Shown: positions 44,742 through 46,039 of the stretch, piece by piece
Position numbering within the stretch: position 1 is the first letter of the stretch
Layout of the letters: the number at the start of each line of letters is the position of its first letter
Source of the DNA: Dimorphilus gyrociliatus
Lineage: Eukaryota > Animalia > Annelida
DNA length: 64,000 nucleotides
Reading direction: 5' to 3'
Assembly (NCBI GenBank): GCA_904063045.1
Contig: CAJFCJ010000012.1
Location: 1,984,001 to 2,048,000, forward strand
Notes under the pieces: model-generated
What the model saw: only the letters and a program-made list of their open reading frames with translations
Told to the model about the DNA's origin: nothing
The model's database searches: none
Program-made: the position numbers and the translations under genes

Positions 44742-46039
44742 TCAATCGTAAGTATTTTCTATCTCATCGGATTTTTTGTCAATAGAAGAAGAACGAGCTC
44801 GAGATCTAGACCTCTCATCTCTTTCTCTATCTCTTCCCCTGTCTCTATCTTTTTCTCTGCTTCGGTCCTTTTCCTTTTCTCGATCCCGTTCTCTATCTCG
44901 ATCAATCTTCTGACCATCTCTCGAATGTGAGCGACTTCTGATAACAATATTTACGATATTCAATTGCATTAACAATTTAAATGTGTCTCACCTGTGTTTT
45001 CTAGATCTACTTCTACTTCTAGACCGACTGTACGACTTCTTCCGTCCTCGCGATCTGGATCTTGACCTCCTCGACCTGCGACGCTCCTTGGATCTTGACC
45101 TATAACGATCACGAGACCTCGAACGATATCTTCTGGTCCTGTCCTCTTGGCGACGCATTTGTCCTGGTGCTGAACATATATATCGACGGCTTTTGCATCA
45201 AACATATGCAACTAATCTAATATACTAACTTTTACGATCTCCTTTAGCAAATTCTATATGCAGCTCACGACCATAATATCTTGTTCTATCCAGGTTAAAC
45301 AAGGCTTCATCTGCGTCTCGTTCATGCTCAAACTTTCACTTGGTTAAGGATTATTTTACTTGCTGTAATTCTCTACATCTTAAACTAACTAATAGAGTAC
45401 ATTTCATTACACAAAGCCTTTCGGTTTTTTTTAACTATTATCTCTACAAAAAGCAAGCAGAGAGGCGGATACATTTTGACAATCTTAAGTGTGGGCTATC
45501 ATCATTGCTGTGTCTTTAAGAGATGAGCTTGACTTTCAAATCTTTATATGTATCTTTGATCTTTACAGATGCTTGCTTTTGACTTTAAGGCTTGCGTAAT
45601 CTTTATGCGCTCCTTTAACATTTCAGTCCTTTTGCGGACTTTGACGCAGTGCAGCGCTTTCAGTCTGACAAATACATACAAAAAAAGAATGTTATAACAA
45701 ACGAATTGAAGCGTTTTTTTTGCTAATTTGAAAGGATATTGTACATAAGCAAAGCCACGGGGATATCGTGTGTAATAATCAAGAGGTACGTAGACATCGG
45801 AAACGGGACCGTATTTACTGAACATGCTTCTCAGTTCTTCTGTCCTGTTTTTATTTTTAAATTATTTAATAAACGTCACAACTTCATTCTTCCTAGTTTC
45901 GCGTTCGTCCCGATCTTGACGAATTATATATGCAAAAATTTAATTTAAAATACAACACTGCCTACCTAGTTCCGTCAGGAACATTTTTAATGTACAAAGA
46001 TGTTCCAGTTGGCCTTCCAACATGGCGATAACGCGACAT
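44742..46039 (-). CDS. SRSF10: SR splicing factor of the SRSF10/SRSF12 type
   Basis: [25 protein letters not shown]|[35 protein letters not shown]|[25 protein letters not shown]|TP, followed by an RS/RD tail. Confidence 0.9.
45334..45739 (-). other. U12-type (minor spliceosome) intron with AT...AA termini
   Basis: 5' splice site ATATCCTTT after the YVQ codons; branch site TCCTTAAC about 10 nt before the 3' end. Frame is restored only if the intron ends AA before G-TTT-GAG. Confidence 0.85.

Follow-up and report, generated by a model that had tools for sequence, protein, structure and literature searches.

A candidate poison exon nested in the U12-type intron of an annelid SRSF10/12 orthologue

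Described switches in SR protein genes and the Dimorphilus locus

Ultraconserved poison exons of SR protein genes were reportedly described by Lareau and colleagues in 2007. Such exons (Lareau and Brenner, 2015; PMC4379411) are non-coding, are more conserved than coding exons and carry a premature stop, and the exon that we describe here in the annelid Dimorphilus gyrociliatus has the same properties; for both, coupling to nonsense-mediated decay (NMD) and feedback are presumed. Unlike them, the Dimorphilus exon lies inside a U12 intron, with a U2-type splice site on one side and a U12-type site on the other. SRSF10 itself is absent from the main text of that cross-kingdom survey (PMC4379411).

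A nested exon of this kind is known from the mammalian Srsf10 module, in which the minor donor leads to the coding mRNA and a major donor competes with it; the inner exon opens with a U2 acceptor, closes with a minor donor and contains a GA-rich enhancer that depends on SRSF10 (PMC7244321, PMC8329584). The Dimorphilus locus shares with mammalian Srsf10 (Meinke et al., 2020; PMC7244321) the gene family and the position of the intron, after ...RGFAYVQ in the RNA-recognition motif (RRM). Also common to the two are productive splicing by the minor spliceosome, an unproductive output containing premature stops, and a strongly conserved inner exon that begins at a U2-type acceptor, carries a purine-rich element soon afterwards and ends at a minor-type donor; a major donor beside the minor one, which may compete with it, is a possible further parallel. 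Given this match in architecture, we read the locus as an orthologous version of the mammalian switch, a reading that we consider likely to be right, with wiring that differs in several respects. The major donor in Dimorphilus is weak and lies 5 nt upstream of the minor donor, whereas the mammalian one lies downstream; the productive intron has AT-AA rather than AT-AC ends; and the inner minor-type donor is of GT type and clearly used, whereas its mammalian counterpart is rarely used. No poly(A) site is evident in Dimorphilus, whereas mammalian exon 3 has one. The Dimorphilus stops lie more than 50 nt from the junctions, which makes these forms canonical NMD targets, unlike the mammalian dn-E3 form. 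Finally, the Dimorphilus motif is AAAG/AAAGAY, whereas the mammalian block is described as 'GA-rich', and the likeness to vertebrate exon 3 is one of position, architecture and motif content.

The Drosophila prospero twintron and other nested U2-in-U12 introns (PMC8329584) resemble the arrangement proposed here, in which a purine-rich element would decide between spliceosomes. Both outcomes at prospero are coding isoforms, whereas the Dimorphilus alternatives are unproductive and involve competition from a second U12-type donor. In the literature that we searched, which covered few subscription journals, we found no description outside mammals of the module or of a link between the minor spliceosome and SR-protein dosage. 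The mammalian module is already known, and the Dimorphilus locus would be an invertebrate member with variant wiring. That such an exon exists in a miniature annelid allows the age of cross-talk between the minor spliceosome and SR proteins to be tested, and the support is threefold: conservation at ultraconserved-like levels, actual splicing, and clusters of the motif at this intron in animals ranging from Cnidaria to arthropods.

Host gene, minor intron and RNA contigs

We built a gene model from the 64-kb stretch of D. gyrociliatus DNA analysed (the window), which over 1,901 bases is 100% identical to contig CAJFCJ010000012.1 of assembly GCA_904063045.1, and from assembled RNA contigs of four runs, namely X19 (at least 99% identical to the window, and hence called source-like), X1, X2 and X3 (from a relative, 95–99% identical). 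All of these runs consist of contigs, in which depth is a rough guide and which do not show isoform proportions, transcript ends or tissue regulation. The gene, on the minus strand like all features described below, is an SRSF10/12 orthologue with one RRM and an RS domain. Exon 2 matches Pfam RRM_1 (E 3e-8), and both the exon-2 matches and the orthologues that a related query retrieved bear names such as SRSF10/12-like, SRSF10-like, SRSF12-like and FUS-interacting SR protein 1 (FUSIP1). Exons were searched singly, and joined translations were made in a script for stop placement. The sequence also occurs in coral and marine metatranscriptomes, consistent with the habitat of D. gyrociliatus, a marine meiobenthic annelid with a genome of 73.8 Mb (PMC7854359).

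The coding part of exon 1 occupies 45966–46039 (ATG at 46039; 24 aa), and its joint with exon 2 is present in all four runs. After intron 1 (GT-AG; 45965–45845), exon 2 (45740–45844), placed by RRM_1 and RNA joints, encodes the RRM as far as a C-terminal ...RGFAYVQ. The U12-type intron (45334–45739; 406 nt) is followed by exon 3 (45230–45333), which encodes the second half of the RRM (34 aa) and is likewise placed by RNA joints, and then by intron 3 (45229–45170), exon 4 (45169–44992), intron 4 (44991–44938) and a last exon that ends at about 44543. Joined from its exons, the productive protein is 218 aa long with an RS-rich tail. For this gene the public annotation records no more than an RS-rich tail of 129 aa and lacks both the RRM exons and the minor intron, because gene finders overlook the AT-AA intron.

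The host intron is a genuine U12 intron, removed with AT-AA ends. Productive RNA requires its removal inside the RRM, between a donor ATATCCTTT (45739–45731) and an AA end, with a U12 branch-point sequence TCCTTAAC (45343–45350); the joint 45740|45333 is present in two runs, X19 and X1 (unitig depth in X19, as a rough guide, 895). AT-AA is the commonest non-canonical type of minor intron (PMC10639083). D. gyrociliatus has lost ~80% of its minor introns, mostly via deletion (PMC10639083), and it keeps this one. That the SRSF10 intron has been kept, with an ultraconserved interior, despite such loss argues for a function, which would give a concrete selective reason why compacted genomes retain a minor intron and possibly the minor spliceosome itself. 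Many animals have an ATATCC donor at the corresponding codon. Exon 2 contains the weak major donor, TAT|GTACAA (GT 45744–45743), 5 nt upstream of the minor donor and overlapping it; its GT is part of a valine codon, is absent in some species, and is used in the X3 contig.

Within the U12 intron lies a non-coding inner exon of 192 nt (45473–45664), present in RNA contigs of X19 and X3. Its acceptor region (45665–45705) contains a branch-site-like TTATAAC, a polypyrimidine tract and an AG at 45666–45665; the sequence TTCTTTTTTTGTATGTATTTGTCAG terminates at 45665, 75 nt past the first base of the U12 intron (45739), where the original prediction had placed a strong major-type acceptor. Its U12-like donor, AAAAT|GTATCCGCC, occupies 45464–45472. 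The exon had been predicted to span 45544–45664; the start stands, and the end lies beyond the stop codon, at 45473. An ATGATGA box-C-like motif is found at ~45507, and A-rich stretches are present after the exon.

Isoform b is represented by contig 8 of X19 (326 nt; depth, a rough guide, 1170), which is continuous from 45769 to 45473, passing through the unused minor donor and through the 45665 acceptor, and then joins 45332 (joint 45473|45332, GT..AG). The 140-nt intron that it skips starts with GTATCCGCC, ends in AG and shares the TCCTTAAC branch site, and no pyrimidine tract is present in the sequence before its AG; it is most likely a second U12 intron, of GT-AG type, by its sequence features. 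Its 3' cut falls one base beyond that of the AT-AA intron, so that two RNA joints 1 base apart define twin 3' splice sites (45333–45335): AA| (45335–45334) pairs with the A-start donor and AG| (45334–45333) with the G-start donor, with TCCTTAAC ~10–11 nt from both. The locus would be a natural example of A-start and G-start U12-type donors that share one branch site and have 3' cleavage sites one base apart. Introns 1, 3 and 4 and the 140-nt sub-intron are without coverage in X19; the retained 267 nt therefore represent a specific isoform and not DNA or bulk pre-mRNA.

Isoform c is represented by contig 15 of X3 (367 nt; depth, again a rough guide, 3.4), which joins 45745 to 'ACT' plus 45662 onward and continues to 45329. 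The relative has one additional T at the acceptor (ACTTGAAAG, as in locus L001), which makes the junction exactly GT(45744)...AG(45665)|A. A junction into 45664 had been predicted, from the AT donor or a nearby GT; the acceptor is used, and its partner is the GT at 45744, not the AT donor. This use is seen in a single contig, of a related strain or species rather than of the source-like run X19, in which the main unproductive form uses the GTATCC donor at 45472 and not the 45665 acceptor. A contig of X2 enters the intron from exon 3 and reaches 45402, and none of the RNA contigs represents a cassette form, in which one molecule would hold both inner junctions.

Every alternative form has an RRM cut off after RNP1, and its early stop precedes exon junctions by more than 50 nt, in keeping with the 50-nt rule for NMD. 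The frame read through from exon 2 runs ...VQ(YPF...VR)LKALHCVKV...QRYI before a TAA at 45546–45544 (65 codons open beyond exon 2); it applies to isoform b, whose stop has exon junctions 71, 174 and 352 nt downstream, and to full retention. Because 75 nt amount to 25 stop-free codons, the inner-exon frame of the original prediction is this same read-through frame, and the stop proposed there holds for read-through and isoform b. The observed 45745|45664 junction instead sets a frame that ends, by script translation, at a TGA at 45625–45623. With stops more than 50 nt upstream of later junctions, these messages should undergo NMD or yield only a truncated RRM.

From these junctions and stops, together with the conservation described below, we consider 45664–45473 to be probably a conserved regulatory poison exon nested in the RRM-splitting U12 intron of an SRSF10/12 orthologue, as the original prediction of an unproductive exon in an invertebrate SRSF10 minor intron had it.

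The AAAG array in the window and in other animals

The inner exon had been noted for repeated AAAGA elements, and these exceed chance. Between 45664 and 45473 there are 12 AAAG and 5 AAAGA, where the window-wide rate predicts 1.8 and 0.7; in dinucleotide shuffles of the exon the mean number of AAAG was 4.0, with 12 reached in 0 of 2000, and 5 AAAGA were reached in 0.9%. The array spans 45660–45514, its 12 AAAG including 5 AAAGAY and 6 TAAAG, and it forms the densest 200-nt stretch of [AC]AAG in the entire window (score 15, where the mean is 2.4 and the sd 1.75; first of 12,760 windows). Described binding motifs of SRSF10 include the SELEX site AAAGACAAA of the vertebrate protein (PMC8522700). 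The AAAG/AAAGAY array is similar to AAAGACAAA, and by this likeness is a predicted SRSF10 site; AGAGAV, another reported SRSF10 motif, is absent from the inner exon.

These elements suggest a switch in which productive mRNA would form when the minor spliceosome joins ATATCCTTT (45739), via TCCTTAAC, to the AA| site (45334). Two dead ends would compete with this route: a short U2-type intron from the weak GT (45744) to the strong acceptor at 45665, and the 140-nt intron from the exon's GTATCC donor (45472), through the same branch site, to a cut at AG| (45333). Each dead-end reaction would remove one end of the productive intron. Excess SRSF10 would bind the AAAG array, define the inner exon and divert transcripts from the minor-spliceosome route, a negative feedback that minor-spliceosome activity would oppose. 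The competition would then be dual: one contest, between spliceosomes, would set the GT 45744–AG 45665 reaction against the U12 path, and in the other two U12-type donors would vie for a single branch site. We infer that SRSF10 feedback via the array is the most economical mechanism. A major-versus-minor switch like that of mammals had been predicted; the architecture agrees, and the wiring departs from it in the upstream position of the major donor and in the second U12-like donor, which gives the main unproductive form in source-like RNA.

We also compared the locus with its counterparts elsewhere among animals. Exon 2, used in a word search, matched many genomic ORFs with a terminal ...FAYVQYP, the read-through of CA|ATATCC at the same codon. 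The loci compared came from the cnidarian Hydractinia symbiolongicarpus, the annelid Lamellibrachia satsuma, the mollusc Aplysia californica, a Centruroides scorpion and three metagenome animals, and a U12 intron occupies this position in all of them; no Branchiostoma locus is on record. In all seven loci scanned, the Dimorphilus window and six others (4.8–64 kb, both strands scored), the densest 200-nt window of [AC]AAG falls inside this intron on the sense strand, a result that is partly post hoc, the motif having been widened to [AC]AAG after some loci had been viewed. With plain AAAG, chosen from Dimorphilus and the literature before the other loci were viewed, no window elsewhere in the locus scores higher in six of the seven; an antisense window outside the intron ties in locus L005, the best window in the scorpion lies elsewhere within the same intron, and in Aplysia a single window outside the intron outscores the best one inside. 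The Hydractinia intron contains 4 exact copies of AAAGACAAA.

In L005, Aplysia, Lamellibrachia and the scorpion, a strong acceptor (..TCAG|AAT..) is followed by a (C/A)AAG-rich stretch and then by an ATATCC donor, and the four share collinear, CAAGACAAGCAAGT-like short blocks (L005 against Aplysia, E 6e-5 and 7e-4). L005 and Aplysia also have GTGAGT 15–20 nt after the inner ATATCC donor. In five of seven loci the cluster is followed within 250 nt by an RTATCC (binomial 3e-4; the threshold is post hoc, and Lamellibrachia falls exactly at its limit). The layout of the inner exon in these other animals is predicted from genomic sequence. Against other phyla, the Dimorphilus inner exon gave no significant match by sensitive blastn, and only its acceptor region aligns, across six species (MAFFT); homology with the inner exons of other phyla and with mammalian exon 3 would rest on position, architecture and motif content. 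The original prediction had left deep conservation and convergence side by side. Comparable inner elements in a cnidarian, molluscs, an annelid and a scorpion favour deep conservation.

Thus, the mammalian feedback switch is probably of great age, and the comparative signal, which appears to reach Cnidaria, may be the more interesting part of these results. A stronger version, which we put forward tentatively and rate somewhat below an even chance, is that the inner exon and its (A/C)AAG array are ancestral to cnidarians and bilaterians, which would make the loop between SRSF10 and the minor spliceosome more than 600 million years old. If true, this would help explain how a minor intron survives in a genome that has deleted so many of them. 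Lamellibrachia and Aplysia also carry tandem copies of exon 2, wired with a U2 acceptor and a U12 donor; as the inner exon has the same wiring, it may descend from an ancient exon-2 duplicate that degenerated into a regulatory exon.

Purine-rich elements and SR proteins stimulate U12 splicing. The AAAG-rich element might be an intronic enhancer of productive U12 splicing, with the alternative junctions as by-products of no regulatory role, and in agreement with this the productive junction is well represented in the RNA contigs and the cluster is found in all the species, the inner splice sites varying more among them. An enhancer would not explain why the acceptor tract (41 of 41 positions) and the GTATCC donor are conserved and used in RNA, why five of the seven loci have an RTATCC donor past the cluster, or why in X19 the unproductive and productive unitigs have depths of the same order (1170 against 895, depth being a rough guide). 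We regard this account as unlikely, and retain the regulatory poison exon as the preferred reading.

Conservation against a relative and the remaining alternatives

To place constraint along the gene, we used a relative represented by loci L001 and L007–L009, found via the neighbouring zinc-finger gene (protein 83% identical) and read-through ORFs; its neutral sequence is saturated against the window. Exon 2 is 99% identical between the two, exon 3 92%, exon 4 80% and exon 5 74%, the RS-domain coding exons thus being 74–80% identical; intron 4 is at 57%, intron 3 at 45% and the 3' flank at 44%. By contrast, the non-coding inner exon is 96.4% identical as a whole and 99% in its first half, exceeding coding exons 3–5 as well as the introns, and the 41 nt before the inner AG (45665–45705) are 100% identical (41/41), with one extra T in the relative. 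The inner element differs in conservation from introns 3 and 4 (Fisher p = 4e-26) and from coding exons 3–5 (Fisher p = 8e-14). Conservation in relatives, which the original prediction had set as a test of the exon, is therefore what we find at this locus, at 96.4% and 100% against 45–57% for ordinary introns. Among the signals, the relative retains 11 of the 12 AAAG repeats, the GTATCC donor (as GTATCCACC), TCCTTAAC and the AA|G 3' end.

The unproductive RNAs might instead be splicing noise or incompletely processed nuclear RNA, with the conservation reflecting a function at the DNA level, such as an enhancer for neighbouring genes. Minor introns are known to be spliced slowly and are often retained, and intron 1 and the 3' UTR are unusually conserved against the relative (88% and 91%), as they would be if the whole locus were constrained. 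Conservation is at its maximum precisely on the acceptor, exon and inner donor, and it falls in the first 25 nt past the minor donor, which are poorly conserved and carry an 11-nt indel. Further, a strand-specific array recurs in the same intron in seven animals of four phyla, and in X19 the second sub-intron is wholly absent while the first 267 nt are abundant, which is not random retention. Noise or DNA-level function is, in our estimate, very unlikely to account for the element.

Mammalian exon 3 provides a precedent for a different output, since its isoform ends at a poly(A) site within the exon (PMC7244321). An inner exon that served mainly as an alternative terminal exon, cleaved and polyadenylated inside or just after it, had also been proposed for Dimorphilus, and the A-rich stretches that follow the exon would suit it. 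A scan of the sequence in and just after the exon found no AATAAA or ATTAAA, and both informative contigs pass on into the next exon, although contigs cannot show 3' ends. We consider a mainly terminal exon highly improbable and did not carry that part of the original prediction forward; the internal poison exon remains our reading.

That the element is a coding exon for a short protein (half an RRM with a basic tail) or a host for a small non-coding RNA is scarcely credible: the 65 open codons past exon 2 and the box-C-like motif point that way, but indels of 11, 1 and 1 nt shift the read-through frame in the relative, whose own ORF (P0010) ends elsewhere, substitutions follow no codon pattern, the exon has no Rfam family at E<=1, no box D downstream and a folding energy equal to that of shuffles (z ~0), and the mammalian short protein is unstable (PMC7244321). 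We accordingly rejected both a coding alternative exon, on the broken frame, and a hosted small RNA, on the Rfam and folding results. No RNA contigs with the 93-aa read-through ORF are on record, and the in-frame peptide of the original prediction is not conserved; the broken frame indicates that the constraint is on RNA signals, not on a peptide.

In the second sub-intron, between the inner donor and the shared branch site, a further block at 45380–45421 is fully conserved in the relative (identity 1.00 in the sliding window at 45421).

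The shared 3' end and the second sub-intron

Two introns, one starting with AT and the other with GT, share a common branch site within the SRSF10/12 gene and are cut one base apart at their 3' ends (window 45333-45335, minus strand). The AT-start intron ends in AA, and the GT-start intron ends in AG. These twin 3' cuts illustrate, in a natural setting, how the first and last nucleotides of U12 introns are matched. The second sub-intron contains a conserved block of ~42 nt (AAAGGCTTTGTGTAATGAAATGTACTCTATTAGTTAGTTTAAG; 45380-45421, minus) that is identical in the diverged relative. 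Immediately 3' of the GTATCC donor lies a strong, conserved acceptor-like site (CTCTCTGCTTGCTTTTTGTAG/AG; 45445-45472, minus); no junction into this site was found among the RNA contigs.

Tandem exon 2 copies and the minor intron of other animals

Exon 2, the RRM exon directly before the U12 intron, is present in tandem at the Lamellibrachia locus (three copies; L010:1630-2579) and at the Aplysia locus (two copies; L011:8283-8896). The third Lamellibrachia copy is degenerate, with AA in place of the AG acceptor and the donor ATATCTTTT; all other copies pair a U2-type acceptor with the U12 donor CA/ATATCCTT, a wiring that they have in common with the inner exon of D. gyrociliatus. With this pairing, the exon 2 copies would be mutually exclusive owing to spliceosome incompatibility. 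The orthologue in the cnidarian Hydractinia (L003:9185-10751) has a minor intron with the variant donor ATATCTTTT, in which TTCTTAAC is present and the 3' end is AC. This intron also contains four exact copies of AAAGACAAA inside a repeated GGTTAAAAGACAAAAGAA unit.

Conservation, annotation and the neighboring gene

Intron 1 (45845-45965, minus) and the 3' UTR (44543-44759, minus) are 88% and 91% conserved, respectively, compared with 45-57% for introns 3 and 4. Such high conservation hints at additional regulatory constraint on the SRSF10/12 gene. In the public D. gyrociliatus annotation, the product assigned to this gene is RS-rich and just 129 aa long (L002:4532-4995, window about 44742-45205); the gene model lacks the RRM exons that precede the AT-AA intron. 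About 170 nt separate the SRSF10 start codon from the start of a divergently transcribed C2H2 zinc-finger gene (46211-48253, plus), whose annotated product has 807 aa. With just two relatives in the protein search, this zinc-finger gene is, on that basis, lineage-restricted.
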